Source: Laetmonice hystrix
Lineage: Eukaryota
Assembly (NCBI GenBank): GCA_965235115.1
Contig: OZ249441.1
Coordinates: 15,066,001-15,130,000, forward strand
DNA: 64,000 nt
Direction: 5' to 3'
The first letter of the stretch is position 1, and every line of letters starts with the position of its first letter. The notes under the pieces were generated by a model. That model did no database searches and had not been told where the DNA came from. It saw nothing but the letters and a program-made list of their open reading frames with translations. The position numbers and the translations under genes were made by a program. Shown here piece after piece: positions 45,401 to 64,000 of this stretch.

Positions 45401-48400
45401 CCGGGCCCTCCCAGTTGTACAATTAAAGTATTGTCAAGGTTAATCTAAACTGTAGACATTTTTTCTTACTTTCTTTTCCTTAATAATATATTGGGGATCC
45501 GTAAGGTTATTACTAGAACATATTGTTATCTTATAATAATTATCGTCATGAAGCCGGACTTTGTCCCCAGTTGGCAGTCTTCATGACGTACACTGACTCA
45601 ACCAACTCATCCATTACAACCCTAAGGTTTTTTCTAAGATAATTTCTAAATTCCCCTATGTAGCCAATCTTATATTAAATCGTAGAGAATATACCGTTCT
45701 ATTGTACAGCAGCTGTGTTATATAAGGCGTATCACAGTCTGGCTGTCACTCTGGTAGGCCTATACACAGTAACTCGGAGTAAGTTCGCTCCTGGTTCCCG
45801 GTTGTGCCCAAGAAGGTCCTGAAATTGACGGACTGACCTGACACGGGCAGATCGTGTTGATTTATGACTTTCTACCAGTGGACTTATTCCATAGTTATTG
45901 ACTCTGACATTAACACAAGTGTCGGTTAGCCCCCACATCGGGGCAGCTGTCACCACTATGTAAGCAAGGGTTGGGCAGGGTTAGATTGGATCAGTCTCGA
46001 GCCAGGTCCGGGTACCATTTATAGCAGCAGACAGAAAAACCAATACTATAGTATCTCCCCCAAGTATCTTCCTCTGCCGTCTGAATTGTTCAGTAAATAT
46101 AGTCATCATCTGTATAGTTACTTTCGTTTCACCAGACATCCTCGTATTTGGGACCTTTCTAAATGAAGATGTCGCTAGCTTGCGGTTTATTTAAACAGAG
46201 AGCAGAGCGTGTGGTATGAAGTCACATTTTGCCGTAGCTCAAGGGTATGCATTACCACCTTCAGTGTCTCCATGGCATGTAGCTTCTGTGTGTGTATAAT
46301 AAATACGCTCGTGTGTATCAGAGCGAGAAGGGTTGACCCTGGTGGTCGGTGAGCGGTGGGGGGGGGGGGCTATGTGTGTCATTGCTGTCTTGTTTTCCCA
46401 TTGATGACGCACAGAGATCGTTGATGACACACTTGGTGTGTTTGGATTTCTGTCGGGACCGCCCCCTCCCCTGGATCTGTCCATGCGTATAGACACACTC
46501 TCAGGACCATATGTACATACGACACAGGTCGTCTCTCGAGGCGCGCTATCGTTTTTTTCCTGTATCTCCGCTAACCTCATCAGAACATGCGACACACATT
46601 CGTCTGGCATCTTGGACTCGCTGGCATGTCGATCGGTGGTGCCATAGCAGGGCAGTCAGTGAGTTTTAACGGGGTCTTTATGTAACTACCCCTCTCGAAC
46701 ATCTCTGAGACGTTCAGAAGATGCCAGACGTAAGCTCTACAGCCGCTCCAAACCTCACGTCAATGTTTAGGGGGTTATCTCACGTGATTATCGGATAATC
46801 GGATTAATCAGTGATAGAGATGACGGTTTTGAAGAGTTTGATCGTCTGCCTAGTTATGACGTACGCGGTGGCGGTGGTGCCAGTTTCAGAGAACGTAACG
46901 ACTGCGGAGGGTGGTGCCGGCGGCGGCGGGGAGTTGGAGGACCCCGAGCCGGTCGACTGTAGCCGGATCGAAGTCTCTGGACGGTGGGATTCGTTCCGAC
47001 TCTCATGGACTCCCATCTCCGTACATGGACACGCTAAGGTCACATACGAGGTCATCCTCTCCTACCGCATCAACAATAGACAGGAAATCAAACACGTTCC
47101 AGTAAGTAATACTTAGAAACACGCAATCCAAAGGTAACGATCGAAAAATGTCTGGAGGCTTACATTCTATAACCTCGTTTTTTCTCTAATAGTATTTGGA
47201 ATAAAGTGAGAAATTAGGGAAGCAGGTGAATTATGTCTGACTACACATATATATCTAACAATTATTGATGTTAGTCAATAGTAATAGTGAAACAAATATC
47301 CATTTTGGTGTATAGCAGAAAGATATCATAAAATCATCAGGGTACCAATGTATGGGATATTGAAGAACATGCCTGATTGAAATACCCCTGAATGTTATAA
47401 GATTTTCTGATTTGTCGATTTAGATGTAGAGTTTCTATTTAGAGTTATGACCTAACACCGTACCACTTCATCATCCTGCGTCAGTGCCTGACAGTGGAAA
47501 AGAAAAAAAACCCAAATGTTTACATTACCATTCAGTATTTCCACGTAATCGGGTCTGCACAAGGAGGTTGATATCTCACCTAACAAAAAGTTCAATAACT
47601 GGACAGTATTGGTACCTTTTTATAGTCTTCACAGATATTGTAGGAAGAAACTGAGGTTTTACTTTGTTGCTGCACTATAATTGGTAAGGCATGCCTAAAG
47701 TGTTCCTCCAAGCCTTGAGGGTAATGTGGTGAGACAGGCCGGTTTACCTCATGGTTTGCGGTTGAAATAGAAGCACGACTGAGAAACGTCTTTACAATAG
47801 GACGAAATGGGGGTGAACTGCGGGGGTGTATAGATCCATCAGTACATATCCCTCTAGGATAATCTGCTTGGGATAGATTGAAGTAATCCATATATTACCG
47901 AACAAAGGGTTCACATCCAGTAAAAAGGTCACATTGACTCGTACAAATGACCAACACATTTTTTTTGGAGGGAGGGGGGTCATTTATTAAATCGGATGGG
48001 ATCAGTAATTTGTGCTTGTATACTTTTTGTTTTGGGTTGGTTTCGTTCTTGTATTTCACATATCGGAATTAATGTATAGAATGACCATTAGGAATAATTA
48101 ATTGCCCGTCGTGAACTATTGTAAAGAGTATAGAAAAAACTTTTTAAATTTTACATTAGATTATTCTTGTGCAACTTAACAGATTTAGTTCAGTTCAGTT
48201 TTCCCAACTCGCTATATAACACAAATTAAATTTTAATGAATCACGTCTAAAAAGCTCCCCTCTCAATCTGGCCTCATAGAAATCCTGATAGTAGCAGGGA
48301 TTTATATGAAATTCCTTGCGTATCCTTTCAGAGATTAAGTTCATGTTATCACGGTTTTGATGATGTTTAGTAGCGATCACGGTTTTAATGATGTTTAGTA

Positions 48401-51400
48401 GCGATCACGGTTTTGATGATGTTTAGTAGCGATCACGGTTTTGATGATGTTTAGTAGCGATCACGGTTTTGATGATGTTTAGTAGCGATCACGGTTTTGA
48501 TGATGTTTAGTAGCGATCACGGTTTTGATGATGTTTAGGAGCGATCACGGTTTTAATGATGTTTAGTAGCGATCACGGTTTTAATGATGTTTAGTAGCGA
48601 TCACGGTTTTGATGATGTTTAGTAGCGATCACGTTTTTAATGAGGTTTAGTAGCGATCACGGTTTTAATGAGGTTTAGTCGCGATCGGGTGAGATCACGC
48701 TGCCAAACCAGCACCTTGTACAGTGGCGGATCCCATGGTTTAACCGACCATCCCAACCTGCTGAGATATCATGATATCATGATATCATGATATCATGATA
48801 TCATGATATCATTATACCTGCTGAGATATCATGATATCATGATATCATTGTCCATCCTGTTTGTGCCATGTTCATACCATCATCCTGTTTGTTAATTCCA
48901 CCATCCTGTGTTAACCATAATGTCCAGGAGACGGATGATACGTTCGTGAACGTGACAGACCTACACGACCTCCGTCCCTACAGTCGGCTTGGTGTCTCCA
49001 TCAGATCCTGTACATCTTGGGGGTGCTCGGAGACTGGCCAAGCTAACCTCACCACTCCCATGTCAGGTGAGTGAGCAGAGGGTAGAACCCCCCCCCCCCC
49101 TCCCCACCACCACCAATTATTCCAATCCCCAGACTTACTCCCAACCCATAGTCTCAGTGCCCATATCTCACCCCAAAACTTCCCTGGCCCTAACCCTGCT
49201 CTTGGGTCTAACCCCCACCCGCCATAATTTCTGGGGGGTGTGGCCATGTGGGGAATAACGGAGCCGGGTACACCTGGTCACACACCTGGTCCAGGTGTGT
49301 TCCACACACGGTCACGCCCCACATCATAGAGCCAGTATGACGTCATGCAGTCAGGCAGGTACAGCCGCCAAACATCTTGGACCTCAGGAATGTTATTCTA
49401 ATGCACTGCTCTTTCAAGTTGGCATTTTGGATGGTTTTTAAGAGGCATCCGATTGGAAGTAACTGTAGTTTTTATTGCTTACGACAAGTTTAAAACGATC
49501 CTAATATTTTGTTTAGACTGCCAGGCAGAGTTTCAGATAGATTGACATTTTGACATGGTCTGACTCTCAGACAATGACAACAAACAGTTCGTCATATCAA
49601 CGATCCTGAAGCTACGCCGCGTAGCTACAGAATCGTCGGTCATATGGTCTTTGATAATCATTACGAGTAAATACATCAAAATGTTTCTTGTTATAATGCC
49701 CTTGTAGTTTGAATTATAAACAGAAGAGTGCGTTGAGCAATGTATTTGACCTTTTTTGACCCTCGCAGCGCCCAGTGTCCCGGAGAACCCTCAAGGGTTC
49801 GTGACGTATCAAAGGCAACCATTAGATCGTAAATACAGCGTGGATGTTGATCTACATTGGTCACCATCAGCGCACCCTAACGGCCTGTTGGTGAACTACA
49901 CCGTATTTGTTAGACTCAACCGTGAAGGGATGTGGACCAAGAAACTGGTCAGCAGTGATTCGTACCATTACAGGATCGAAGGCGCTAGAAAATACGCCCT
50001 CTACAAATTTAAGGTGCGTTAATAATAATTACTGGATATTGCATGACGTTACGAGGTCGAGACGGTGCACTACAGTAACTGGAAACAATGTCGTTATATT
50101 TGAGACCCCATAAGAGTGCATTATGCAAACTTGCGCTGACTGAAGTCATGATCATTCAGTTTAACCTTCTGTAAAAACATGATCAGTATGATCCTCTTCA
50201 GATGTGATATAAGGTTTCAGGTTGTGTGAAAAGAGTGATACTATAACAATTAATTATCTAATTGTCTGCGCGCGTGCAGGTGTCGGCCTGTACGTCGGTA
50301 GGCTGCAGCCGGACGACCCGGGAGGTGGTGGTGAACACAGCCGAGGAGAACCCTGTCCCCCAACTCCTCCTAGCTACAACTACATCCATCAGTCTCCTCC
50401 TGCCCGACGCTCACAAGTCGTCACCCCTCGCAAACAGCAGTCCCATCGCCCTCACCTTCGAGGCGGAGGAGAGCGCTCTCTACTGGATCGACAGGAGCAG
50501 CCACATCCTCAAGCATGCCACAAAGGGAAAACACACGGTACGTATATACGAGTACAGCTAGAATCCTCTCCGCAACAAGATCGCATGGACCATCCCCGGA
50601 TACTGGGAATGTGTTCCATCATTTTAGCTTAAAATCTCACGGATGTCGCATAGACATAGCGTGTTTGTCAATTCAACATTGTCAATGCCTGGATCACATA
50701 AAAAGTTGATATTAATGACATGATAAATGCCTGCAGTTCCTGGACGTGGGTGGTGACGGTCGGAGTATATCAGTAGACTGGGTGGGCCGAGCACTTTACT
50801 GGATGGAGGCCGATCGGTACCGGGTCTGTCAAATCCGGACTTACAACCTGGATCGTGGAGAAACTAATAGTAGTACTGTTCTTACCATGGAGGCGAGCGG
50901 GGCTTTCCTGGTCGTCCATCCCTACCACAGGTAACTCACACCTTCTCTATAATACATGTAGAAAGTATGGGTATAGGTAAGGTCCTGCTGTGACTGTCTC
51001 AGCGTCCTGCCCTGACTGTCTCAGGGTCCTGCCCTGACTGTCTCAGCGTCCTGCCCTGACTGTCTCAGGGTCCTACTCTGACTGTCTCAGGGTCCTGCTC
51101 TGACTGTCTCAGGGTCCTACTCTGACTGTCTCAGGGTCCTGCTGTGACTGTCTCAGTGTCCTGCCCTGACTGTCTCAGTGTCCTGCCCTGACTGTCTCAG
51201 GGTCCTACTCTGACTGTCTCAGGGTCCTGCTCTGACTGTCTCAGGGTCCTACTCTGACTGTCTCAGGGTCCTGCTGTGACTGTCTCAATGTCCTGCCCTG
51301 ACTGTCTCAGTGTCCTACTCTGACTGTCTCAGCGTCCTACTCTGACTGTCTCAGCGTCCTACTGTCTCAGCGTCCTGCTCTGACTGTCTCAGCGTCCTGC

Positions 51401-54400
51401 TCTGACTGTCCCAGCGTCCTGCTCTGAGTGTTCCAGCGTCCTACTCTGACTGTCTCAGCGTCCTGCTCTGACTCGCTCAGTGTCCAAGTATTTTTTCCAA
51501 GAATTTTTAAGAATTGCCACTATTTCAGCACCCTGTTCTGGTCGGAGGTGGACGTGTGGGGCCACGGGCGGATTATGCGGGCCCCAATGAACGGCTACTC
51601 GCGGGAGCAGGTGCTAGGATGGCAACCGAAGGAGGCGGGCCGCAGGAGGCGTGCCTCGCCCACCTGTCGGTGTCCTGCCATGCAGGTCAGCCCTGTCTTC
51701 CAGATGGACATGTCGGAGACAGGTAACGGACAGATATACTTTGTGGACAACACGACAGGCAGTATATGGGTGGCCAGCAACAACGGCTGTGACTGTAGGA
51801 GCGTTGTCGACGCTGCCGGACGCACCGATCTGGGTGAGTTGTTGACATGTTAATGTTAACATCGCAATGTTAAACCAGCGAGGCTATCTACTCCTTGTCC
51901 CGCTAACGCGAAATCTCTTGAATTCTCGTGACATACTTAAAGAAAATCTGTCCGAAAATTGAAATAAACGCAGTCAATTCAACAAAACTTGAGTAAAAAC
52001 AATTATTTGAAGGGGTTTCTAGCAGTCTGGTACTATGGCACGTCCATATCGACAATATTTTTAATTAATTAATTAAGCGTTTACCTATTTGGCTAGAGAC
52101 GAGAGCACGCGAATCAAATCATGGCCTTATTTGGATTATGGGGGGAGGGCGGGCGGAGCAGTGCGAGGCAACGCATGCGCCCAATCCCGTTGCTTAGTAA
52201 CGATCGCCCTAAAAATGCTAACGCGGTCATGGCGGTCGTTCTCGGTTCTCAGTCCATTGAGATGAAAAAATGGGATGTATCGCCTCATTATGGCTCATAA
52301 TCAACAAGAGACCTAGCACAACAATGTTATGGATACGACAGAATGTTTTATCAGTCCAGTGAGATAGTTTCAAGATCAGGTAAGCTTGAAATACGCGGAT
52401 TCGTAGGAGATGGGGACAAAACTCGGCGGCCTTAGGGTGATCGATTACCTATAAACGCCCTATTAAAGAGACGCGTCACTTTTCTCAGTGGCGCCACCTC
52501 GTGGCAATTGACGAACTCTATTTTTACACTTTGCAACGCGTTTTTTACGTCACTCAATGCTGTCAACAACACGGCAATGCAGAGGCAGAGTCAAGTCTGG
52601 CCGCTTCGCATCCCAGAAACAGTTTGACAAAAGGCTTCACGATGCCAGAAAAATGTACTTGACTATGTGTTTTAACATTGGAGTCTATGGGACCGATAAG
52701 ACCCTTGGTAGTGAAAATGTCGATATCTCATGAATTTCCATGGTGACATATGATTTTTTTTAATCTAAAGTGTTCAAAACAAGTCATGCAACAATTCTGA
52801 GAAGTATTTTCAGAATCTCTGGGTTAGAAATGTCTGAAAAAAATCTTCTCTCTTCTAATTCGAACCAAAAATTTCACGTATCTTTCTCTACTGTAGACTG
52901 TAGTAGTGCGAGTTGAAGGCCTATCTTCAAATGCTCATAACTCAGGATCCGATATGGTGACCCGCCATTTTCTTTGCACCAAAATACTCGAAAAATGTAG
53001 AATTATTTTATGTGAAAGTAGCCTGAAAATCTCTGGGTCAGAAATTTTTGGCTTATTATGTGTAGGCTTGCCACCCGACTCGATCGCTGTGGATCTCCAG
53101 CGGTTGTACTGGGCCCGGGAGGGGGACACTATCCTACACAGCATCCTGAAGAAGACGGGCAAGGGCTACCTGAAGAGAAACGTGTCTTTGTCCCACAAGG
53201 GAGGCCGGATCATCCAGGTGCTCGCTTACGGAACGCACCTGCAGCCAATGCCAGGTAGGTCATGACAGACTTATAACTACCTGCAGCCAATGCCAGGTAG
53301 GTCATGAAAGACTTATAACTACACCTGCAGCCAATGCCAGGTAGATCATGAAAGACTTATAACTACCTGCAGCCAATGCCAGGTAGGTCATGAAAGACTT
53401 ATAGCTACCTGTAGCCAATGCCAGGTAGGTCATGAAAGACATATAACTTCACCTGCAGCCAAAGCCAGGTAGGTCATGACAGACATATACTACCTGCAGC
53501 CAATGCCAGGTAGGTCATGACAGACATATAACTCTATCTGCAGCCAATGCCAGGTAGGTCATGACAGACATATAACTCCACCTGCAGCCAATGCCAGGTA
53601 GGTCATGACAGACATATAGCTACCTGTAGCCAATGCCAGGTAGGTCATGACAGACATATAACTCTGCCTGCAGCTAATGCCAGGTAGGTCATGACAGACA
53701 TCCTATAACTCTACCTGCAGCCAATGCCAGGTAGGTCATGACAGACATATAACTCTACCTGCAGCTAATGCCAGGTAGGTCATGAAAGACATATAACTCC
53801 ACCTGCAGCCAATGCCAGGTAGGTCATGACAGACATATAACTCCACCTGCAGCCAATGCCAGGTAGGTCATGACAGACATATAGCTACCTGTAGCCAATG
53901 CCAGGTAGGTCATGACAGACATATAACTCTACCTGCAGCTAATGCCAGGTAGGTCATGACAGACATCCTATAACTCTACCTGCAGCCAATGCCAGGTAGG
54001 TCATGACAGACATCCTATAACTCTACCTGCAGCTAATAGCCTTATGCCAGGTAGGTCATGACAGACATATAACTACCTGCAGCCAATGCCAGGTAGGTCA
54101 TGACAGACATACGACCTGCAGCTAATGCCAGGTAGGTCATGACAGACATATAACTACACCTGCAGCCAATGCCAGGTAGGTCATGACAGACATATAACTA
54201 CCTGCAGCCAATGCCAGGTAGGTCATGAAAGACTTATAACTCCACCTGCAGCCAATGCCAGGTAGGTCATGAAAGACATATAACTCTACCTGCAGCCAAT
54301 GCCAGGTAGGTCATGAAAGACTTATAACTACACCTGCAGCCAATGCCAGGTAGGTCATGAAAGACTTATAACTCTACCTGCAGCCAATGCCAGGTAGGTC

Positions 54401-57400
54401 ATGACAGACATCCTATAACTCTACCTGCAGCAAATGCCAGGTAGGTCATGAAATACATCCTATAACTCTACCTGTATCCAATGTCAGGTAGGTCATGACA
54501 GACCTCCCATAACTCCACCTGTATCCAATGTCAGGTAGACTATACTATAGCCCAGTTTCACTAACACCTTCAACCAATTTTATAGATAGGTCAGTCGTCT
54601 TCTGTACCAGAAGAATAGCGGGGTAATATTTTCTCTTTCTCCTAGACCCAGCATGTCTGCTGCCGACCGACTACAAAGGAAGACCAAGGCTGATAGAAAA
54701 CAGGAACACAAGTCTACACCTGTACCTGCCACCCTGGAAGTCAGGCCCTAACTGTTCTAACATTAGCCTACCTAAGGTACTCTACAAGGTTCACTATTGG
54801 GAGTTCAACGGCTCGGAGGATACCCATACCTGCTCAGACGACAAGAAAAAGTGTCAAGTTAAGGTCAGTGGCGTATCCAGGGGGGTTTCCAAGTATCCCG
54901 GAAGCCCCCCCCCCCTTAAAAAAATTACTATGTTAAGGACATTTTGGTAAAAAAAAAAGGGGGTGTAAAATGCATTATTTTAACCAAAGGAAACCTTCAT
55001 ATTTCCACACAAGATGTCCCGAGATTGCATTATTTGATGTCTTTTGTTAAATTTCCTAGAGGAGCATGGCCTAATGGCCATCTCTGAAGTACCTAAACTT
55101 CGGAAATCCCCCTTAAAAAATTTTGATACGCCACTGAAGGTCGGCATCAGTCCCTTGTGGTTTAATTGGAAAACAATGTCATTCTGCGCTTTATTTGAAT
55201 TATTTATCTGAAATATTTGAATGTTTAAGTAAAAGTAGCCGGTAAATGTCCTGTGCTTCAGATGACGTACGACAGCAGTGTGACGTTGGATGGCCTCAAG
55301 CCGTTCCAGAAGTATTTTGTAGAAGTGACAGCGGAGAACCACCACATGCAGAAGTATAAAATACCTGCTAGTGTTGGGGAACCGACCAAATTTATAACTG
55401 CGCCAGGAGGTACGTGTAGTCTGGAGATACTAATCAATGCCTTTTTATCTCGTATCTCATCAAATTTAATTCATTTTGTTCATCTTGTTCATTTTGTTTT
55501 GTGTCACAAATATAAATGTAGCGGTATTTTCCCTTTTCTTGGCACTAAATGTACACCTGAACAAAAGCACCTACTCTAAAAAGCACCACTCCATAAAAGT
55601 ATCCAGCAATGTAGAGTTTCTAAAGTTTTGATTGTTTTCGTCCTACTTCAGTTCCTTCCGCACCAAGAAACGTGAGAGCCATAGCCGTCGACCCAAGGTC
55701 AGTGAAGATATTCTGGGCGGAGCCTGCACAACCTAACGGAGAGCTGCGCGGCGTGTCATACCAGTTACATTGGGGTGAACGGGTTATTGTACCAGAGGTC
55801 AAACTACTGGGGATTTATGAGGGAAAGAACACACAATCCTACAGTTACACGCTCTCAGGCCTCAGCTCACATACCAAGTATTACTTCAAGGTGATCTTTG
55901 ACATTAGTAAATCCAGTATTTGAGAGTATAATCTAACCTTAACTTGTATATTGTAATTGAAGAATTGGATGAAAGACTATTGCTTGGGAATTCTGATTTT
56001 TGTCGCCGGGAGTCGCTCTGGGCCATGGATCTGTTTCTGACTCTTTTGAAACTTTCTATCATCATGCCTCAGTATTGTTCTAGTGTTCAAGTGTTGATAG
56101 GCCTACTAGGCCCTATTGCTGAGAGATGCTAGCATCATTTGGACACTTCCCAGGTCGTCTTAAAGTACCGATACTTATAATCTTCTTGTTAATTTTGAGC
56201 CACAATACAGTTATAAATTTATACCTGAACCTTCTAATGAATTGTACATGGCCCTGATACAGGTTGTGGCCTACTTCTCCGAAAACCCGGCTATGGGAGA
56301 GAGCAGCAGTCAGACAGTCAGTGCCCAGACTTTCTCGGAGCCCAACCCGGTGGTGCTGGTCGACCGCGGCCAGGACTGGATCACGGTGGCTTGGCAAGCT
56401 CCCTCTGACGGATCGATTGTGAAACACATCCTGCAGTTCTCCAAGGTATGTGATAACACTCGGGTGGTCTACAACTCGTTTTAAACTTGGCGAATATCGG
56501 AATCTCTCCGTCCATTATAATGATTGGAATGGTGATTAAAGTTTGTAGATCCATCGGGAGTATAATGTTGGTTAGGGACCGTTGTAATTGTGACTTTGAT
56601 ATCCTATACTTAATAATGACACCAATGATTTTATCTAGTCCTGCGCTAGTTTGATACTTGACCTTGACACTGAGCCTTTTCTCATTCACGCCGGGAAAGT
56701 TTGACCAATCGTCATCTCTCATATCTATAAACCAAACACCAATCCCAACTTTAAATTCAGTTCCAATATCCGAAAGCTAACCCTATAGTGCGGACCCAGG
56801 GGACCTACCCCCCCCCCCCCCCCGCCACTTTCCTCCACTTACCCATGGACTGTATTATTGTTGGTATTGTCAGGGAGATGGTTGGGAGAGCCAGGGCCCG
56901 GCAGTCAGAGTCACCCAGGCCGGGATGGTATACAATGAGACAGCCACCAACCTGACGGCTGATACCAGCTACGACTTCACCATGGCCGTCTGGTACAATA
57001 CGACGGTGTCGAAACTCTACCGGTCCCAACCTCCGCAACACTTCATTACTACAGGTACGACCATCTCACTGAACGCAGTCGTTGGGAAATATGTAGCAAA
57101 AAGGGCTTGTTTCGGGGCAGGCGGCGTTTTCTCGAGGAGAAATGGTATTTTTGTCATTTTACCGTTAATTCAGGATACATTTAAATACCAAATCAGGCCT
57201 GGTGTCGTTTTATTAAAGTCAATTAGTCATTCATACCTGCGGCTCAAGTACCCGAAGTTAAAGTCACCCACATTTAATATCACATCACATGATGTCTGAC
57301 TGTGTTACGTAATTAGTACGTTGTCATGGTGATCAAGAATTAACTAATCTTTGATTTACAGCCGGTTACCCAGGGCAACCGGAGTCTCCGACGGTGACGA

Positions 57401-60400
57401 CCCGGTCAGATGATATCGCCGTGGTGAGATGGACCCCGCCGGATGATGGAGGTCTACCCATTGATCTCTACCGGCTGACCGTCAGGTGAGACCGGGCATC
57501 GGGTTGTCAAAACTTAAGATCTGGCTTAAGGTCAAGCTTAACGCTTCTGATTTGCTGCTTTGCTTCAGCCAGCATTTGGGGGGGGGGGGGTTTCACAAAC
57601 CCTGATCCATAAGAATCCCCCTCTATCAAGGACGAGCAACTTTAAAAAATCTTTAAAAAATCTGACATCTTTGATTCCATTCAATACTATGTTTACGCGC
57701 TGTTCTCTGTGTGACGTGGGTGTTTGACGTTTGGTGGTTTATGACGTCATCAGGCGGAGTGACGACACTAACTGGACGGTGGTATATAACGGAAGCAGTA
57801 CGGTATGGGAGGTTAGCGGCCTGGAGCTGGAAAGATCCTACGTGTTCAGGGTGGAGGCCCACAACTCCATGGGCTGGGGGTCTCCCTCACCCGGCAGTTT
57901 TCAACATACGTACACCCCGCCGCTTGCAAGTAAGTCCCTCTCACCGTCTCCAGGGGCGGGTCCAGGATTTTGTATTGGGGGAGAGGGGGTTGGTGACCCC
58001 CATATTTGCTGTGATGTTGGAAATGCTGGGGTATCCTCCCCCGAGAAAAAAAATAATTATAGCAAGTGAAGTTGGGGGCTTTACCCCACTATACGTTTTA
58101 ATGTTACAGGATCAGTAGGCATATTATATTTTCTTATTTTGTAAAATTCTTTTCATTATAATACTAGGCCCTATTATCTTTCCTCAAATACAAAGTGTGT
58201 GGCTGTCTTGTTCCAAGCTCCCGGATGTTTACTCTTCCACTGTATGTACGGTGGCCCAAAACTACAAAGTCTGCTGCACAGCAGCACCTCGGCAAACTGG
58301 TGTGTTCAACAGCAAAACTGTTCTGCTACACGGGGTCTTTCTGCTGCTCTGCGGTAGAAGTGCTGCGCCGCACGGATACTCTGTGCTGCTCCACGCCCAA
58401 GTGAGATGCTGCACACCAGTTGGAGGTGTTCCACGGTGTCTAGGTCCGTTAGTCCCACAGCCCAATTAATAGTCCCACAGCCCACTTTGGCTGTTGGACC
58501 AATGGACTGTCAGACCAACGGGAAAATATAACTAACCCTAAACCTAACCTTAACTCTAACCCATAGGGTGTACCGTCATGTAGCCTAAACAGAAACGACA
58601 GGTGCACGTACGGCAGTGTTAATTCCGTATTAATTAATTTCTGACATTTTCGATCACAGTTTTTCATGTGGTGTGGGCCCATTGGTCCGACAGCCCATTG
58701 GTCCGACAGCCCATTGGTCCGACACCCTATGGGTCAGAGTTAAGGTTAGGTTTAGGGTTAGTTATATTTTCCCATTGGTCCGACAGTCCATTTATCACAC
58801 CGTGCAGCACACTACTTGGTGTGCCGCACCACAGAGGTTTTGTGACGCAGACTAGTTTGCCCGTCGAGCACTATGAATTTACCGTGCAGTGCATAAATTT
58901 AACTGTGGAGCAGTTAAATCCAAAGTCACTTTGGTGGGAGAAACGGGAGTTTATTTGCTACAACCTACAACTCCAATACAAAATGTTCCATGGGCTTGCG
59001 CGCTGAAGACCTACTTATTCGGTACAACATTTGCCTCGAATGGATAAAGAAGCGCGCGACTGACCACACTTGTTTATGGTCAAATGCCAAGTAAACACAA
59101 GGCGCAACTTGCAGTATGTGCAACCGCTGTAGCCTACCGCCGGCTTTACATATTATAGCTGATTCATACAAAGGAAAGGCAGAAGCGCCACACACAAAAT
59201 AATCTACGAAGCGCGCACTAAGACAACCTCTTAAGTTTCAATGTAATCATGCACTGTTACATACACGCTGTCAATGTCAGAGTAATTGCTGTTACATAAC
59301 GCTGTCAACAAATAGCCGATATTTAAAGTGACGACTAGTGAACTTTACATACAGCCAACTAGCATCCTTAACAATAAGTCGGCTGAAGAATACTTTAACC
59401 TAATTATAAATGCTGCTAGACAAAAGATAAAACAGAAGCGCCGGCCATTAAACAACATTTTTGAAATAACATTCTGGTAGCTGTTTGCTTGAGAAACGCG
59501 CTCCTAATGAGTCTCGGATGGACATGTCTCTGCCCAGGTGTGGGAGGGTGGGAAAAGTTCAACTGCTCCGTACGAGCGCATGGAAGAAACTGATGCCTGG
59601 TATTAGTTTCACTGCATCTTTACATATCCCTCGTTAGTCACCGCTCTGAAGCTGTCCACACTGGTTTATTGTATATGCATCAAAGGCCAACTGACCCGTT
59701 ATTATGTAATCACATATGCCCAACGACTTCAACCTCCTAAACCCCGGAACGGTCGGGATTAATTACCACGCATGCTGGGTGACGTGGATTTAAACTAAGA
59801 TAAACTCCTTTTATCTCCCCTTAAATCCAAAGTCACTTTGGTGGGAGAAACGGGAGTTTATTTGCTACAACCTACAACTCCAATACAAAATGTTCCATGG
59901 GCTTGCGCGCTGAAGACCTACTTATTCGGTACAACATTTGCCTCGAATGGATAAAGAAGCGCGCGACTGACCACACTTGTTTATGGTCAAATGCCAAGTA
60001 AACACAAGGCGCAACTTGCAGTATGTGCAACCGCTGTAGCCTACCGCCGGCTTTACATATTATAGCTGATTCATACAAAGGAAAGGCAGAAGCGCCACAC
60101 ACAAAATAATCTACGAAGCGCGCACTAAGACAACCTCTTAAGTTTCAATGTAATCATGCACTGTTACATACACGCTGTCAATGTCAGAGTAATTGCTGTT
60201 ACATAACGCTGTCAACAAATAGCCGATATTTAAAGTGACGACTAGTGAACTTTACATACAGCCAACTAGCATCCTTAACAATAAGTCGGCTGAAGAATAC
60301 TTTAACCTAATTATAAATGCTGCTAGACAAAAGATAAAACAGAAGCGCCGGCCATTAAACAACATTTTTGAAATAACATTCTGGTAGCTGTTTGCTTGAA

Positions 60401-63280
60401 AAACGCGCTCCTAATGAGTCTCGGATGGACATGTCTCTGCCCAAACACCACAAGTAGAGAGTATGGTAGGAAAAAAAATAGACTGGCATGTCCAACCGTT
60501 AAGTAAAAGTACCAAGCAACACACATTATGTAGACGTAGAAACACCAGAACCCCTTGGCAAACAAACCAAGATGTACAAAGTCACCAGTTCATAACCTAA
60601 TAGGATGGTGGGTAACCGACTCCATAAACGTATGGCCAGGGTTGATTCCATAATGTGGAGCTGATGGTGGCCGACTTCTCAAAATGGAGATCAGTCTTTG
60701 ATAACCGTGCGGTTCGTGCAGTCTGGAAACGGCATCGGCTACTACATTTTCTACACCAGGGAAATAGACTGCCTTCATTTTGAAATTAAACTTAGCGGAC
60801 AACCAGAAAATTCTCCGTAATGACTTCATTAAGAAGGGGTCTTTGCAGCTACCTTTGTTCAAGATTCCGACGGCCGCTTGGTTGTCGCAGTAGACAAAAA
60901 CACGATGATTTGCCCACTGTTTTGCCCACTGAGTGGCGGCAGTCTCCACCGCCAGAGTTTCTTTGAAATTAATGTGTAGACCTGAAGCGCCAGTCCAGCT
61001 TTTGAAAGGGGTATACACATAGTCTCTCCCGAACACCGCCCCCGCAGCGACCGGACAGGCATCTGTCCATACTGGTACTACTGGTCGATTGTCCATCATC
61101 GGGGTACATCCATTAAAGACATCCAGAAACTCAATCCACCAGTCGATGTCTTCGCGCATGGCTTGTGTGACGCGCGCACGGTGCCAAGGTGACTTCAATT
61201 GCGATATGGGATCGATCAGTCTCCGGATGAAAGTTCTGCCACCTTGTATGCACTGGCAGGCCCAGTTTAGTTTACCAACCAGTGACTGTAGATCACGCTT
61301 TTTGATCTTAGATTTTTGCCGAACGTGGCGCAAGAGTTGTCTAATGTCCTTGCATTTCTCCGCAGGCAGCTCCAGGGTCATAACAACAGTATTCAGCATA
61401 ATTCCCAGAAAAGTGAGCTTCTGACTTGGGCCGGCAACTTTGTTGTAGTTTATGCTAAACCCAAGTTTGCGTAATGTCCTAATCAGCTCATTTAGCGCTC
61501 TCCTGCACTCCTCTTTTGTGTCCGCTATGATTAGAAAATCGTCCAAATACACTATGATGGAAGGGTAGCCTTTCCTGGCCATAATCCGCCTGACTGCCTG
61601 GCCCAGTTCGTGGAATATCTCTGGCGACCGCCTGGCACCGAAGGGCAAACGTTTGTCTACCAGGTAAGTAGGTGCATTGTCGCCAGTAAATATCCACTTT
61701 AGGCCAGTGGCAGCATAATTTGAAGGATGGACCAAGACTGACCTGTAAGCGTTGGATAGGTCTACCTTTGCCAGATATGCGCCTTGTGGCATGACATCCA
61801 CAGCATCCTGAATTGACATATATTGGAACTTGTTGTGCCACGCGAAGGTATTGAGGGACGAGCCTACCGGTCTGCTGCAGTCATGTATGAGGCGCACACG
61901 CCCATCCTTCTTGGGAATGGCACCCAGCGCTGATACGATTGGGGGTGCTTCCGATACGGTAGCATATCTGCCATGGACGAGCTCCTCCAATATCTGGGCC
62001 TCCACCTTGTCCGTATGCCGCGCGCACGTGGCTGACCTGTAGTTGGGGATCTCCACGCGTTCGCCGATGGCTTTTGGGTCGGTGATGTGGAAGCCATGTC
62101 TGATCCCCTCCAACAGGTAGCCACGCTTGGGGTCGTCGTCTTGCAGTTCTTCCTCCCATGCTGCATATATCAGGGCCCCACTTACACCAGTTTGTAGCGG
62201 GACCCTGCTCCGTTTTTTGTCCTCCTATTGTGGCAAACGCCAGACTGCTGGATACCTGCACTGCTTGGCTCCGGGGATGTACCTCTGCCATTTTCGGTTG
62301 ACCCTGGGAAAGGTTTTTCCCTGCGCCTGAATCTTGTGTGCACGTATTTGCATTTCCTTCCATAAGGGCAATACTTTCCCGAACTGCTTAGCCATTCGCG
62401 ACATCTCGGAGGGGCTAGGCACATCTTGAAGTCCAGATACAGCTGTGCACTCGCTAATCCATAGTTCAACAGTTCAACACCTTAGATAAAATTAATCCAT
62501 AATCCAGTTTTTGGCAAACATCCTGCTTTGCACCGACACCTCATGACTCCTAGTACGGAACTTTCATGTCAAGAACGACAACTTTTACACATACCACTGC
62601 TCAGATAAAAGGTTCCACTGCCAAAAAGTTCAACTGCTCCGTACGAGCGCATGGAAGAAACTGATGCCTGGTATTAGTTTCACTGCATCTTTACATATCC
62701 CTCGTTAGTCACCGCTCTGAAGCTGTCCACACTGGTTTATTGTATATGCATCAAAGGCCAACTGACCCGTTATTATGTAATCACATATGCCCAACGACTT
62801 CAACCTCCTAAACCCCGGAACGGTCGGGATTAATTACCACGCATGCTGGGTGACGTGGATTTAAACTAAGATAAACTCCTTTTATCTCCCCCACAAGTAG
62901 CCGTGCAGCAGAGCATTTTAGCTGTGCCGCAGCAGAAAACATCCGTGCCGCACCACATTTTTGATGTGTCGCGCCACAAAGTACGGGTGGAGTACATCAG
63001 CTTGCCGTGCAGCAAGGCATTTTGGTACTGTGCAGCACACTTTGTAGTTTTGGGCCACCGTAGTACGGAGTACATCAGCTTGCCGTGCAGCAAGGCATTT
63101 TGGTACTGTGCAGCACACTTTGTAGTTTTGGGCCACCGTATTAATGTAATATAGTAACATGTTCAATACGTGTTGTACGTTCAGCGGCAGCCAGACCGGC
63201 CGATCAGCTCACAGTCATCCTGGCAGTCATCTTTGCCATGGTCTTCATCGTGGCTTTTGTCTTCATCTGCATCATCCTAG
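2651..63280 (+). CDS. ROS1: ROS1/sevenless-family receptor tyrosine kinase, ectodomain plus TM, 32 exons reconstructed (partial gene)
   Basis: Exons with GT-AG boundaries and chained phases sum to 5719 nt. Domain order is four CxxxC pairs, FN3, FN3, YWTD propeller, FN3, propeller, FN3s, propeller, FN3s, TM. Motifs such as GRGAWQGWEYEVK, VRAFTEGGTGPWSEP, DPGGGFMYWSTLDTVEVARLDG and LALDPDRRALYWLV match my recollection of ROS1 (no database search run). Confidence 0.9.
2718..3577. repeat. 31-bp minisatellite (with 40-bp variant)
   Basis: Unit ctagctcaggaacagttggactattaaatta; starts 16 nt after the 2701 donor. Confidence 0.95.
2792..3013. mobile_element. MITE (Harbinger-like) inserted in a minisatellite
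   Basis: ~32-bp TIR ctgggcccggtttttt(g)gtttacttttccacc; internal tgagca/tgctca motifs; ctg/cag ends could be a CWG TSD. Confidence 0.7.
4937..6228. mobile_element. Kolobok-like MITE (TTAA TSD)
   Basis: ttaa|aggggcat…atgcccct|ttaa, imperfect ~14-bp TIR starting AG. Confidence 0.7.
5194..5973. mobile_element. Transib-like MITE, 780 bp with 236-bp TIRs
   Basis: Termini CACTGTG…CACAGTG, 5-bp TSD actaa (5189-93, 5974-78), TIRs 5194-5429 and 5738-5973 with ~3 mismatches. Confidence 0.8.
7234..7293 (-). other. Candidate 60-nt exon of a nested antisense transcript
   Basis: cctcctacag|gctctg…accac|gtgagc on the minus strand. Confidence 0.5.
7283..8569. repeat. G-rich ~29-36-bp minisatellite, ~40 copies
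   Basis: Unit ggtctcccagagcctgtaggagggggacggggg. Confidence 0.95.
8665..10228. repeat. 47-bp minisatellite, ~34 copies
   Basis: Unit ggttatccctgaagccggcctgtctgacagttcccgatgagatgcta. Confidence 0.95.
10211..10332 (-). other. Candidate 122-nt exon of a nested antisense transcript
   Basis: tttttactccag|gggtc…ctgtcag|gtaggc on the minus strand; all three frames contain a stop. Confidence 0.5.
12344..13099. repeat. 47-bp minisatellite, ~16 copies
   Basis: Unit gggatgaacatgacataacctatctggccctgtcatacacacattat. Confidence 0.95.
17358..18737. repeat. Composite minisatellite of 54-bp and 57-bp units
   Basis: Both units share gtacctgcgccatgactgaggctcta; the two types occur in alternating blocks. Confidence 0.95.
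20400..21297. repeat. 45-bp minisatellite, ~20 copies
   Basis: Unit gtaattcagaatgaatatgtcagggggtgcagtccctctgatggt. Confidence 0.95.
21813..22018. mobile_element. PIF/Harbinger-like MITE, 206 bp
   Basis: taa|tggccctgtcacacc…ggtgtgacagggcca|taa, 15-bp TIR with TAA TSD. Confidence 0.75.
24451..24593. repeat. 36-bp tandem repeat, 4 copies
   Basis: Unit gggagctgtgaactggtggtctgcaggccagccaaa. Confidence 0.95.
26313..26598. repeat. 42-bp tandem repeat, ~7 copies
   Basis: Unit gtctcagcgacacggtgagactttgacacgttgctatcgtta. Confidence 0.95.
27361..27422. repeat. (TA)n microsatellite
   Basis: ~30 TA units. Confidence 0.97.
27943..28002 (+). CDS. ROS1: ROS1-like exon (CVNGCKLWRVALDQTCVASC)
   Basis: ttttcag|...tgc|gtaagt, 60 nt, phase 0-0, two CxxxC pairs. 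Confidence 0.85.
31309..31344 (+). CDS. ROS1: ROS1-like micro-exon (NNASNGDAQDSE)
   Basis: tcttgtag|...gag|gtaaac, 36 nt, phase 0-0, plausible linker between Cys pairs. Confidence 0.7.
31729..31789 (+). CDS. ROS1: ROS1-like exon (VPMCMFGCRKAVEVYVQNIA)
   Basis: tttcag|...cag|gtcagt, phase 0-1, CMFGC pair. Confidence 0.85.
34198..34415 (+). CDS. ROS1: ROS1-like exon, FN3 (…VELQWQE…NLHPFTSYR)
   Basis: ttgcag|...aga|gtaagt, phase 1-0, FN3 signature LHPFTxY. Confidence 0.92.
35597..35899 (+). repeat. 60-62-bp tandem repeat containing the ROS1 acceptor, 5 copies
   Basis: AG acceptors give exon starts at 35625, 35685, 35747, 35807 and 35867. Confidence 0.95.
35867..35948 (+). CDS. ROS1: ROS1-like exon (FRVVVGISNVQQLQSKPSHPIVTKPSG)
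   Basis: tttcag|...g|gtaagg, phase 0-1; acceptor is the last copy of a tandem array. Confidence 0.88.
36313..36636 (+). CDS. ROS1: ROS1-like exon, FN3 (VPSGAP…LKPGTEYSISVAARNRFGLGP)
   Basis: cctcag|...a|gtgagt, phase 1-1. Confidence 0.92.
37051..37167 (+). CDS. ROS1: ROS1-like exon (…AYLILGANHSVRKQD…GNIN)
   Basis: gcctag|...g|gtagga, phase 1-1; alternative in-frame acceptor at 37057. Confidence 0.85.
38014..38494. repeat. 44-bp minisatellite, ~11 copies
   Basis: Unit ggaatcgcagttggagttagcgttgaatgaactaaagatttact. Confidence 0.95.
38770..39453. repeat. 32-bp minisatellite, ~21 apparently identical copies
   Basis: Unit tgattgatcacctctgtgaatcccgagcgacc. Confidence 0.97.
41040..41227 (+). CDS. 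ROS1: ROS1-like exon, propeller (LAIHYYKRYIFVSD…SVDWLHDNLYIAE)
   Basis: tgacag|...aag|gtcagc, phase 1-0. Confidence 0.92.
41433..41527 (+). CDS. ROS1: ROS1-like exon (IVRCSLDG…ITADPYNG)
   Basis: atgcag|...gg|gtaagt, phase 0-2. Confidence 0.9.
41491..41733 (+). repeat. 60-bp tandem repeat containing the ROS1 donor, 4 copies
   Basis: aatgg|gtaagt with GT at 41528, 41588, 41648 and 41708. Confidence 0.95.
41877..42307 (+). CDS. ROS1: ROS1-like exon, propeller (YLYWVHEG…FYWTNG…QPIP)
   Basis: ggacag|...g|gtgcgg, phase 2-1, YWTD-type motifs. Confidence 0.93.
42476..42562 (+). CDS. ROS1: ROS1-like exon, FN3 start (VPLQKPQRL…LWWEAP)
   Basis: ttccag|...g|gtgagc, phase 1-1. Confidence 0.9.
42838..43044 (+). 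CDS. ROS1: ROS1-like exon, FN3 (GRGAWQGWEYEVK…GPWSEP)
   Basis: ttacag|...g|gtgaga, phase 1-1. Confidence 0.93.
43426..43542 (+). CDS. ROS1: ROS1-like exon (DKVEPHLVYTT…)
   Basis: ttgtag|...c|gtaagg, phase 1-1. Confidence 0.88.
44007..44173 (+). CDS. ROS1: ROS1-like exon, propeller (…VAYDWPARKLFWSN…)
   Basis: ttgtag|...cag|gtgaga, phase 1-0. Confidence 0.9.
44487..44836 (+). CDS. ROS1: ROS1-like exon, propeller (ILRSRLNG…DPGGGFMYWST…LYWLV)
   Basis: gagcag|...gt|gtgagt, phase 0-2. Confidence 0.93.
45095..45279 (+). CDS. ROS1: ROS1-like exon (KHGLQYYSNRLFWMN…)
   Basis: tttcag|...g|gtgagt, phase 2-1; missed by the ORF track. Confidence 0.9.
46854..47101 (+). CDS. ROS1: ROS1-like exon, FN3 (…PEPVDCSRIEVSGRWDSFRLSW…)
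   Basis: gcctag|...cca|gtaagt, phase 1-0; alternative in-frame acceptor at 46890. Confidence 0.85.
48348..48687. repeat. 28-bp minisatellite, ~12 copies
   Basis: Unit gatgtttagtagcgatcacggttttgat; followed by (gatatcat)n at ~48765-48848. Confidence 0.93.
48928..49066 (+). CDS. ROS1: ROS1-like exon (…LRPYSRLGVSIRSCTSWGCS…)
   Basis: gtccag|...g|gtgagt, phase 0-1. Confidence 0.9.
49769..50013 (+). CDS. ROS1: ROS1-like exon, FN3 (APSVPENP…WSPSAHPNG…YKFK)
   Basis: tcgcag|...aag|gtgcgt, phase 1-0. Confidence 0.92.
50280..50537 (+). CDS. ROS1: ROS1-like exon (VSACTSVGCS…LYWIDR…)
   Basis: gtgcag|...acg|gtacgt, phase 0-0. Confidence 0.92.
50737..50930 (+). CDS. ROS1: ROS1-like exon, propeller (…SVDWVGRALYWME…HPYH)
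   Basis: ctgcag|...ag|gtaact, phase 0-2. Confidence 0.92.
50983..51475. repeat. 22-bp minisatellite filling most of an intron
   Basis: Unit tgactgtctcagggtcctgctc. Confidence 0.95.
51529..51833 (+). CDS. ROS1: ROS1-like exon (TLFWSE…GRRRRASPTCRC…GCDC…)
   Basis: tttcag|...g|gtgagt, phase 2-1. Confidence 0.92.
53066..53254 (+). CDS. ROS1: ROS1-like exon (GLPPDSIAVD…LYW…LQPMP)
   Basis: gtgtag|...g|gtaggt, phase 1-1. Confidence 0.92.
53237..54538 (+). repeat. ~41-47-bp minisatellite containing the ROS1 donor, ~30 copies
   Basis: Unit acctgcagccaatgccag|gtaggtcatgacagacatataactc. Confidence 0.95.
54646..54863 (+). CDS. ROS1: ROS1-like exon (DPACLLP…CSNISLP…)
   Basis: tcctag|...aag|gtcagt, phase 1-0; missed by the ORF track. 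Confidence 0.92.
54866..55136. mobile_element. 271-bp MITE inserted within a splice donor
   Basis: 12-bp TIR cagtggcgtatc/gatacgccactg, flanked by direct repeat aaggt (54861-65, 55137-41). Confidence 0.82.
55262..55409 (+). CDS. ROS1: ROS1-like exon, FN3 (…LKPFQKYFVEVTAEN…TAPG)
   Basis: cttcag|...g|gtacgt, phase 0-1. Confidence 0.92.
55652..55890 (+). CDS. ROS1: ROS1-like exon, FN3 (VPSAPRNV…WAEPAQPNG…YYFK)
   Basis: cttcag|...aag|gtgatc, phase 1-0. Confidence 0.92.
56263..56445 (+). CDS. ROS1: ROS1-like exon (VVAYFSE…ITVAWQAP…)
   Basis: atacag|...aag|gtatgt, phase 0-0. Confidence 0.9.
56874..57054 (+). CDS. ROS1: ROS1-like exon, FN3 (…NLTADTSYDF…FITT)
   Basis: tgtcag|...g|gtacga, phase 0-1. 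Confidence 0.9.
57362..57485 (+). CDS. ROS1: ROS1-like exon, FN3 (AGYPGQPESP…WTPPDDGGLPIDLY)
   Basis: ttacag|...ag|gtgaga, phase 1-2; missed by the ORF track. Confidence 0.92.
57754..57929 (+). CDS. ROS1: ROS1-like exon, last FN3 (…YVFRVEAHNSMGWG…)
   Basis: catcag|...a|gtaagt, phase 2-1. Confidence 0.92.
58501..58792. repeat. Foldback with 71-bp inverted arms containing telomere-like ggttaggtttagggttag
   Basis: 58501-58571 is the reverse complement of 58722-58792 with 3 mismatches; short cattggtccgacagcc repeats lie inside. Confidence 0.8.
58914..59536 (-). repeat. Split direct repeat B2 (623 bp)
   Basis: Copy of 59821-60443; gives the duplicated 76-aa ORFs in the track. Confidence 0.95.
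59553..59820 (-). repeat. Split direct repeat A2 (268 bp)
   Basis: Copy of 62624-62891, offset 3071. Confidence 0.95.
59821..60443 (-). repeat. Split direct repeat B1 (623 bp)
   Basis: Copy of 58914-59536, offset 907, one mismatch seen. Confidence 0.95.
60590..62224 (-). CDS. Reverse transcriptase-RNase H (pol) of the Ngaro-like element
   Basis: Open frame without stops. RT motifs KVDLSNAY, LPFGARRSP, YLDDF; RNase H motifs WTDAC, HINFKE, YCDN, NVVADAVSR. No ATG near the 5' end. Confidence 0.93.
   Translation of the reverse strand, partial: EDKKRSRVPLQTGVSGALIYAAWEEELQDDDPKRGYLLEGIRHGFHITDPKAIGERVEIPNYRSATCARHTDKVEAQILEELVHGRYATVSEAPPIVSALGAIPKKDGRVRLIHDCSRPVGSSLNTFAWHNKFQYMSIQDAVDVMPQGAYLAKVDLSNAYRSVLVHPSNYAATGLKWIFTGDNAPTYLVDKRLPFGARRSPEIFHELGQAVRRIMARKGYPSIIVYLDDFLIIADTKEECRRALNELIRTLRKLGFSINYNKVAGPSQKLTFLGIMLNTVVMTLELPAEKCKDIRQLLRHVRQKSKIKKRDLQSLVGKLNWACQCIQGGRTFIRRLIDPISQLKSPWHRARVTQAMREDIDWWIEFLDVFNGCTPMMDNRPVVPVWTDACPVAAGAVFGRDYVYTPFKSWTGASGLHINFKETLAVETAATQWAKQWANHRVFVYCDNQAAVGILNKGSCKDPFLMKSLRRIFWLSAKFNFKMKAVYFPGVENVVADAVSRLHEPHGYQRLISILRSRPPSAPHYGINPGHTFMESVTHHPIRL
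62171..62218 (-). promoter_or_regulatory. Candidate -1 ribosomal frameshift signal (A AAA AAC plus stem-loop)
   Basis: Heptamer at 62218-62212 is in the correct ORF1 frame, a -1 shift enters the pol frame, and a hairpin at 62207-62171 begins 4 nt downstream. Confidence 0.7.
62182..62424 (-). CDS. 80-aa ORF1 with CCCH zinc finger (CREWLSSSGKYCPYGRKCKYVH), gag-like remnant
   Basis: ATG at 62424, C-x10-C-x5-C-x3-H spacing, overlaps the pol frame by ~40 nt. Confidence 0.7.
   Translation of the reverse strand: MCLAPPRCREWLSSSGKYCPYGRKCKYVHTRFRRREKPFPGSTENGRGTSPEPSSAGIQQSGVCHNRRTKNGAGSRYKLV
62624..62891 (-). repeat. Split direct repeat A1 (268 bp)
   Basis: Matches 59553-59820 with no difference that I could see. 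Confidence 0.95.
63185..63280 (+). CDS. ROS1: ROS1-like transmembrane exon (TAARPADQLTVILAVIFAMVFIVAFVFICIIL)
   Basis: gttcag|...g|gtgagt, phase 1-1, ~23 hydrophobic residues. Confidence 0.9.
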   Translation, partial: RQPDRPISSQSSWQSSLPWSSSWLLSSSASS

Positions 63281-63335
63281 GTGAGTGGACAAAGAGTCAC
63301 CAAACTAGTATGCAGAACCTAGAGATATCAAGTAT

Positions 63336-64000
63336 CTAGGTTTCTGTCAGTATACTTGATATCCCAACAGATATAGAACCTAGCTGAGTGAAAGCCAGGG
63401 CTAGGTTTCTGTCAGTGTACTTGATATCTCAACAGATATAGAACCTAGCTGAGTGAAAGCCAGGACTAGGTTTCTGTCAGTATACTTGATATCTCAACAG
63501 ATATAGAACCTAGCTGAGTGAAAGCCAGGGCTAGGTTTCTGTCAGTATACTTGATATCCCAACAGATATAGAACCTAGCTGAGTGAAAGCCAGGGCTAGG
63601 TTTCTGTCAGCATACTTGATATCTCAACAGATATAGAACCTAGCTGAGTGAAAGCCAGGGCTAGGTTTCTGTCAGTATACTTGATATCCCAACAGATATA
63701 GAACCTAGCTGAGTGAAAGCCAGGGCTAGGTTTCTGTCAGTGTACTTGATATCTCAACAGATATAGAACCTAGCTGAGTGAAAGCCAGGGCTAGGTTTCT
63801 GTCAGTATACTTAATATCTCAACAGATATAGAACCTAGCTGAGTGAAAGCCAGGGCTAGGTTTCTGTCAGTATACTTGATATCTCAAGAGACATAGAACC
63901 TAGCTGAGTGAAAGCCACGGCTAGGTTTCTGTCAGTATACTTGATATCTCAACAGATATAGAACCTAGCTGAGTGAAAGCCAGGGCTAGGTTTCTGTCAG
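63336..64000. repeat. 65-bp minisatellite with internal inverted repeat (runs off the window)
   Basis: Unit ctaggtttctgtcagtatacttgatatcccaacagatatagaacctagctgagtgaaagccaggg. Confidence 0.95.

Follow-up and report, generated by a model that had tools for sequence, protein, structure and literature searches.

This locus raises the question of whether an Ngaro-like retroelement that encodes a reverse transcriptase (RT) and no tyrosine recombinase (YR) is a one-off double deletion or belongs to a semi-autonomous class that keeps its own RT and borrows its recombinase. The preliminary description of the DNA had favored the second possibility. Here, the element was analyzed within the window, that is, the whole 64,000-nt stretch of DNA, and compared with its relatives in metagenomes and other assemblies. 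With a probability of roughly 0.7, we read it as belonging to an RT-only sublineage of Ngaro retrotransposons (DIRS order), of which it would be a young copy with a complete structure, the YR being supplied in trans.

Structure of the element and its surroundings

Positions 58914-62891 hold a complete Ngaro-type retroelement of about 4 kb with its coding strand on the minus strand. Read in that direction, its order is A1 (268 nt), an internal region (2,180 nt), B1 (623 nt), A2 (268 nt), a spacer (16 nt) and B2 (623 nt). The complete A1-B1-A2-B2 layout with near-identical repeats reported earlier was recovered unchanged; because the coding strand is minus, only the A and B labels swap under Ngaro nomenclature. 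The repeats and the spacer are as follows.

62624..62891, minus strand: A1, 5' split direct repeat, 268 nt, identical to 59553-59820 (labeled B2 in the preliminary description)
59821..60443, minus strand: B1, 623 nt, 99.84% identical to 58914-59536
59553..59820, minus strand: A2, 268 nt, identical to A1
59537..59552, minus strand: unique 16-nt spacer between A2 and B2, coding strand CCCACCCTCCCACACC, containing the family-wide CCCACC motif
58914..59536, minus strand: B2, 623 nt, 3' end of the element, placed by repeat comparison

The 623-nt pair (58914-59536 and 59821-60443) differs by a single mismatch (59493 versus 60400) and the 268-nt pair (59553-59820 and 62624-62891) is 100% identical, so that the repeats differ at 1 of 891 positions overall. 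As is characteristic of Ngaro elements, the direct repeats are split, the internal ones lie downstream of the coding region, and there is no target-site duplication, since the two flanks differ both in the window copy and in four relatives. The B|A junction of the window element reads GGATTTAA|GGGGAGAT. No further copy of the element or of either repeat was found elsewhere in the 64-kb window. The near-identity of the repeats and the intactness of all open reading frames indicate what is probably a young insertion. These two features are the whole basis for calling the window copy "recently mobile", and repeat identity is a rough clock only, because the repeats may be partly homogenized during replication.

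The coding region comprises a short ORF1 and pol, with the following features.

62422..62623, minus strand: 5' leader, 202 nt, from A1 to the ORF1 start codon; translations show stops in all three frames upstream of the ATG
62182..62421, minus strand: ORF1, 80 aa including the stop, a mini-gag with a C-terminal CCCH zinc finger (about 62400..62335) and a basic tail
62212..62218, minus strand: slippery heptamer A_AAA_AAC for a predicted -1 shift from ORF1 to pol, kept near the ORF1 end in L002, L003 and L004
62171..62207, minus strand: GC-rich hairpin 4 nt 3' of the slippery site (minimum free energy -31.3 kcal/mol, z = -2.76; none of 200 shuffled sequences folded as stably)
60590..62224, minus strand: pol, 544 codons plus stop (codons 62224..60593, stop 60592..60590)
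about 61397-61918, minus strand: RT (Pfam RVT_1, E = 3.6e-16)
about 60722-61072, minus strand: RNase H
60444..60589, minus strand: 3' untranslated stretch of 146 nt from the pol stop to B1, where full-length relatives carry a YR gene of ~260-350 aa

The sole recognizable feature of ORF1 is its finger, spaced C-x10-C-x5-C-x3-H. Pfam zf-CCCH matched it weakly, while the homologous finger in the gag of L003 scored E = 2.8e-5, and the gag of L004 aligns to the window element at 62403..62338 only. Pol is read in the -1 frame with respect to ORF1. The heptamer A_AAA_AAC lies in the ORF1 zero frame, past the last pol-frame stop and ahead of the ORF1 stop. The predicted -1 frameshift signal is complete, with an X_XXY_YYZ heptamer in the overlap, a 4-nt spacer and a structure; an analogous hairpin is present in L002. 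The best PDB matches of pol are retroviral and Ty3 RTs. Its catalytic residues are all present (D155 and the YLDD residues D228/D229 in RT; D388, E422, D447 and D497 in RNase H) and are invariant across 34 relatives. Pfam detected RT and RNase H only, with no methyltransferase domain, and pol ends about 45 residues past RNase H. These findings agree with the preliminary description on each point that it had made about the coding region: an uninterrupted RT-RNase H with every catalytic acidic residue (544 open codons, 7 residues), about 146 bp between the pol stop and B1, an ORF1 cut down to 80 aa (62421..62182), and a frameshift signal.

In every complete element, across five independent families, A2 is immediately followed by a C-rich motif beginning CCCACC, at these sites:

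59537-59552 of the window, minus strand
10846 of L002
4365 of L087
4859 of L003
4696 of L044
6464 of L093

The form CCCACCCTCCCA is common to the window element and the L002 type, and the variants are CCCACCCGCCCAC in L093, CCCACCCACCATCCCA in L044 and CCCACCTGACCCACCC in L003. The motif was never found behind A1. Of its occurrences among the loci, 13 are on the coding strand and one is on the opposite strand. Its role is probably that of a cis signal in replication. Complementarity of the motif to the rest of the element was considered and set aside as not general, since it occurs in L044 only (11 nt, with the start of A). A 10-mer, CCACAAGTAG, is present at 62891-62900, spanning the outer edge of A1 and its flank, and again at 60448-60457, 5 nt from the inner edge of B1; the pair is probably a coincidence, because the chance expectation for matches of this kind is ~0.08 over the whole element, and no equivalent was seen in relatives. 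Rfam gave no matches between 57 and 64 kb.

A receptor-like gene on the plus strand surrounds the element, which occupies, in antisense orientation, the ~5.2-kb intron before the transmembrane exon.

44469-58069 and 63184-63281, plus strand: exons of the receptor-like gene, with FN3 domains (Pfam); the upstream FN3 exon ends near 57,936
about 63,184-63,281, plus strand: transmembrane exon with acceptor and donor sites

By eye, segments of this gene with YW[ST]-type motifs resemble YWTD propeller blades, for which Pfam found nothing; the layout recalls that of a ROS/sevenless-type receptor and may be comparable to it. Within the intron, the element has landed in another repeat, whose borders are 40-nt inverted repeats (58247-58286 versus 63023-63062 and 63101-63140) that are 93% complementary and in which GTGCAGCA-like motifs abound. 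There is also a separate foldback of 292 bp, with arms of 71 nt (58501-58571 versus 58722-58792; 96% complementary) in which degenerate telomere-like CCCTAA units occur. The window is also unusually rich in long minisatellite arrays (3013-54538 and 63336-64000; periods of 22-65 bp, up to 38 copies), including a 65-bp array of >10 copies that runs off the window end just past the transmembrane exon.

RT-only relatives within the Ngaro family

The preliminary description had seen no recombinase motif in the element, and three methods came back empty. Pfam searches of coding-strand segments of at least 42 aa found neither a YR nor an integrase; tblastn with the YR of a relative as the query gave no match; and a family hidden Markov model (HMM) built from 30 YRs, run over six frames of the whole 64-kb window, found no YR (best E 9.4). 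The same HMM readily detects YR remnants of 25-48 residues in other loci. Thus, the window element does not encode a tyrosine recombinase, as Ngaro elements do, and it is not autonomous, since it has no integration enzyme and all that remains of gag is a zinc-finger peptide. Compared with its relatives, it has lost the YR and the N-terminal ~80% of gag.

Homologues of the window pol numbered 1,474 below 1e-5, the best being 78% identical, and the DNA of relatives was fetched from several assembly contigs and from metagenomes (80 loci). When these 80 loci are taken together with the first four from assemblies, the order gag(CCCH)-pol-YR is found in 51, for example L004 and L044. The YR of these relatives measures ~260-350 aa and begins ~150-250 nt past the end of the pol match, and in L004 it carries the HSFRRGG...Y catalytic motifs. 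The full-length gag of the family is 390-425 aa long (392-425 aa in L004 and L003) and ends C-terminally in the same CCCH finger as the window ORF1. Complete split repeats surround gag-pol-YR in L044 and L093. Collectively, the 51 gag-pol-YR loci, the YR motifs of L004, the shared finger and the split repeats of L044 and L093 identify the family as canonical Ngaro. The window pol is nested in the tree among gag-pol-YR elements with split repeats, in a comparison made without named reference Ngaro sequences.

Elsewhere in the family, the YR has been lost independently with the RT kept in L003 (which has a full gag), L011 and L030, and YR remnants were found in L034, L026 and L039, although the sister element of L034, L035, has remained intact. 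YR fusions were considered as an explanation of the long tails at the C-termini of P0088, P0009 and P0030 and rejected: the tail of P0088 is low-complexity, and those of P0009 and P0030, judged by eye and from gene lists, are probably other-frame read-through into the start of an overlapping YR gene. An identity with Troyka LTR elements was likewise rejected, since Troyka has LTRs, an integrase and 3-bp target duplications.

Many metagenome contigs of the family end in identical terminal overlaps of 55-125 nt (L030, L034, L007, L017, L042, L055, L065 and others), evidently because assemblers collapse the split repeats into a circle. L030 closes to 3,091 bp without a YR, and the A, internal and B regions of the window element add up to 3,071 bp. 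Three Ngaro gag-pol proteins (P0023, P0039, P0100) are filed under bacterial metagenome-assembled genomes (Methylococcales, Sedimenticola and Candidatus Thiodiazotropha). They are most likely contamination by eukaryotic host DNA, and they hint that the family lives in marine invertebrates.

Phylogenetic analysis of the RT placed the window element in a clade with P0001, P0002, P0003, L095, L001, L002 and L087, nested among YR-bearing elements and supported at 97 SH-aLRT in a quick tree and at 100/98 in a careful tree. In both trees the window pol groups with P0001 and P0002 (74-80% identity), and this trio is sister to P0003, L095, L001 and L002/L087. Clade members come from other assemblies and samples and are 57-80% identical in pol. 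Every member whose state is known lacks a YR; the state of P0003 is not readable. Specifically, there was no YR signal in L001 or L002, none in L095 within the 409 nt past the end of the pol match (all the sequence there), and no YR-sized gene downstream in P0001 or P0002 as judged from gene lists only, without DNA. The YR HMM gave no match on L085 or L087-L090, and its sole match in L086 is a nested insert, considered below. Most members also carry a mini-ORF1: like the window element, L002/L087 (43 aa) and L095 (47 aa) have one, which in these relatives begins immediately ahead of the CCCH finger and stops at the conserved A_AAA_AAC; L001 has no recognizable ORF1.

Complete RT-only elements with repeats 98-100% identical were found at four different loci (L002, L087, L088 and L090), and one assembly has such elements at several loci with repeats that are ~100% identical. 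In two assemblies there are clusters, those of P0001 and P0006, with 20 variants apiece, spread over separate contigs. Between two RT-only subfamilies, the dN/dS of pol was 0.06 at a dS of 0.155, so that the RT has been under purifying selection while the lineage was without a recombinase. Judged from these relatives in other assemblies, the stripped-down RT-only form thus appears to be a multi-copy, selectively maintained lineage. Two RT-only copies (L086 2646-7463 and L089 4231-7279) consist of A1-internal-B1 only, without A2-spacer-B2; recombination between B1 and B2 would produce such copies, as an analogue of solo LTRs.

The HMM scan, RT phylogeny and dN/dS comparison that the preliminary description had proposed have yielded no YR, a YR-less clade with 100/98 support, and a value of 0.06 between RT-only subfamilies of relatives. 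Its preference for a semi-autonomous class over a one-off double deletion is supported by the clade, the shared mini-ORF1, the multi-copy relatives and the dN/dS. Somewhat less firmly than our reading of the window copy itself, we favor the broader view of a long-lasting Ngaro lineage that lacks the recombinase and most of gag, spans >40% amino acid divergence in pol and several hosts, keeps its RT-RNase H under selection, and would be a stable parasite of the recombinases of others.

Proposed recombinase supply and rival explanations

In the proposed mechanism, transcription would run from A1 into B2, and both ORF1 and ORF1-pol would be translated, the latter through -1 frameshifting. The RT would preferentially copy its own RNA, and such cis-preference would explain its conservation. 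The B1-A2 junction would then act as the bridge or template that joins the cDNA ends into a circle; templated closure of this kind reportedly follows the model of Goodwin and Poulter. Integration without target duplication would be carried out by a tyrosine recombinase acting in trans from autonomous Ngaro/DIRS elements of the same genome, and we infer that RT-only elements borrow their recombinase in this way.

Direct evidence that defective Ngaros are mobilized in trans comes from L086, where 1,732 bp (4996-6727) have been inserted cleanly into an RT-only element, in its 3' untranslated region; the corresponding empty site is in L087 at 3189|3190. The insert has its own small split repeats and a YR open reading frame only, having lost gag, RT and the first ~60 YR codons, and is a deletion derivative of a 4.6-kb gag-RT-YR Ngaro seen in L092-L094. 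Comparison with the empty site of L087 revealed that the target was not duplicated. Its sequence, TTTTTAT|AACTCAT, bears a loose resemblance to the B|A junction of the inserted element itself, CCTTAAT|TATTCAT. Since the insert is a mobilized deletion derivative of a YR-bearing Ngaro, defective Ngaros are mobilized in trans in that genome, whose assembly contains YR-bearing Ngaros (L092-L094) alongside the RT-only lineage. A bipartite system formed by an RT element and a YR element was considered and rejected, as the L086 insert is a plain deletion derivative of an L093-type Ngaro with unrelated ends and a distant RT. Among the loci in hand, none shares A/B sequence with the window element, and no YR donor shares A/B ends or the B|A junction with the window element or the L087 type. 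That assembly yielded a single full-length YR element, L093, which has a very distant RT and a different junction; because of its distant RT and different ends, the L093 type is not identified as the donor.

One rival is that the window copy is a recently deleted dead end: either it or its immediate parent, once an autonomous Ngaro, was stripped of the whole YR and of most of gag, and pol has not yet decayed. Internal deletions are indeed frequent in the family, as the YR remnants of L034, L026 and L039, the YR-less L003, L011 and L030, and the L086 derivative without gag and RT attest, and the window holds a single copy. However, the same minimal layout recurs in clade members that are 57-80% identical in pol and come from other assemblies or samples, the RT-only form is itself multi-copy among relatives, and purifying selection acts on pol in RT-only subfamilies (dN/dS 0.06). 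We therefore regard a one-off deletion as unlikely. No more probable is a lineage that integrates without any tyrosine recombinase, by host recombination or repair of a circular or linear cDNA or by RT-primed insertion at breaks, which would parallel the endonuclease-deficient Penelope-like elements. The lack of a cognate YR donor among the loci in hand, the persistence of the lineage through >40% amino acid divergence in pol without a YR, and a window target that is little like the B|A junction would all accord with such a route. Against it, the four complete relatives have precise ends at the A1 start and the B2 end with neither target duplication nor terminal deletions, which fits site-specific recombination of a closed junction, and YR-bearing Ngaros are abundant in the one assembly examined. 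Finally, split repeats confuse assemblers and several metagenome contigs of the family close on themselves, so that an assembly artifact, or a chance arrangement of an LTR-type element with no discrete element present, might be imagined; given the identical layout at different loci in independent long-read contigs, the clean element boundaries and the empty-site comparison for a related insertion, this is very improbable. Thus, a member of an RT-only Ngaro sublineage using a recombinase supplied in trans is the reading that we retain.

The RT-only Ngaro lineage is not a new class of element, and published Ngaro surveys mention copies that are degenerate or truncated. A Ngaro lineage that retains the RT and lacks the YR was not found described in a literature search that lay outside the founding Ngaro papers and Repbase, where an earlier description is possible. 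Ngaro/DIRS replication is still known mostly from models. If the reading is true, the RT of YR retrotransposons would act in cis while the recombinase is freely shared; it is less likely that the lineage instead points to a recombinase-independent entry of such cDNAs into the genome. A lineage that lacks the recombinase and keeps the RT, CCCH finger, frameshift signal, split repeats and CCCACC motif would thereby mark the minimal cis and self-encoded requirements. Together, an RT-only element and a YR donor would form a natural two-component system for studying the trans action of the recombinase on the cDNA circle and the cis-preference of the RT. For annotation, YR-based searches for DIRS-order elements will miss RT-only lineages.

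Comparison with known systems

Ngaro elements, as the work of Goodwin and Poulter (2004) is represented in PMC2632668 and PMC4157794, belong to the DIRS order and have A1-internal-B1-A2-B2 split direct repeats. The window element resembles them in its split direct repeats downstream of the coding region and in the succession of gag and RT-RNase H. Further likenesses are that it has neither a methyltransferase domain nor a target-site duplication and that its RT groups with those of gag-pol-YR elements. It differs from them in lacking a YR gene and in having an 80-aa CCCH-finger peptide as its gag, a reduced state that is found clade-wide.

With DIRS1-like and PAT-like elements (PMC3266345, PMC4157794), the element shares an RT-RNase H of the same broad group and the proposed circular cDNA with recombinase-mediated insertion. 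Inverted terminal repeats and an internal complementary region are features of DIRS1, a methyltransferase domain is found in both DIRS1 and PAT, and DIRS1-like and PAT-like elements all encode a YR (PMC3266345, PMC4157794). In contrast, the window element has no inverted terminal repeats, internal complementary region, methyltransferase or YR.

Reliance on proteins supplied in trans, for the window lineage an inferred property, also links it to the non-autonomous derivatives of YR retrotransposons. One of these is TOC1 in Chlamydomonas, for which proteins are supplied in trans. Another is the SIRE/VIPER pair of trypanosomes, in which the non-autonomous derivative depends on the proteins of its autonomous relative in trans (PMC6681497). 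Unlike these derivatives, RT-only Ngaros lack nothing but the integration enzyme and retain an RT-RNase H on which purifying selection acts. To our knowledge, no report describes derivatives of the SIRE/VIPER and TOC1 type as having their own RT maintained by selection.

Penelope-like elements without an endonuclease, such as Athena, have kept their RT, lost their integration enzyme and persisted across species, and they attach to telomeres. The RT-only Ngaros resemble them as a retroelement lineage that keeps its RT after loss of the integration enzyme, but differ in that their copies are interstitial with precise ends, the window copy being intronic.
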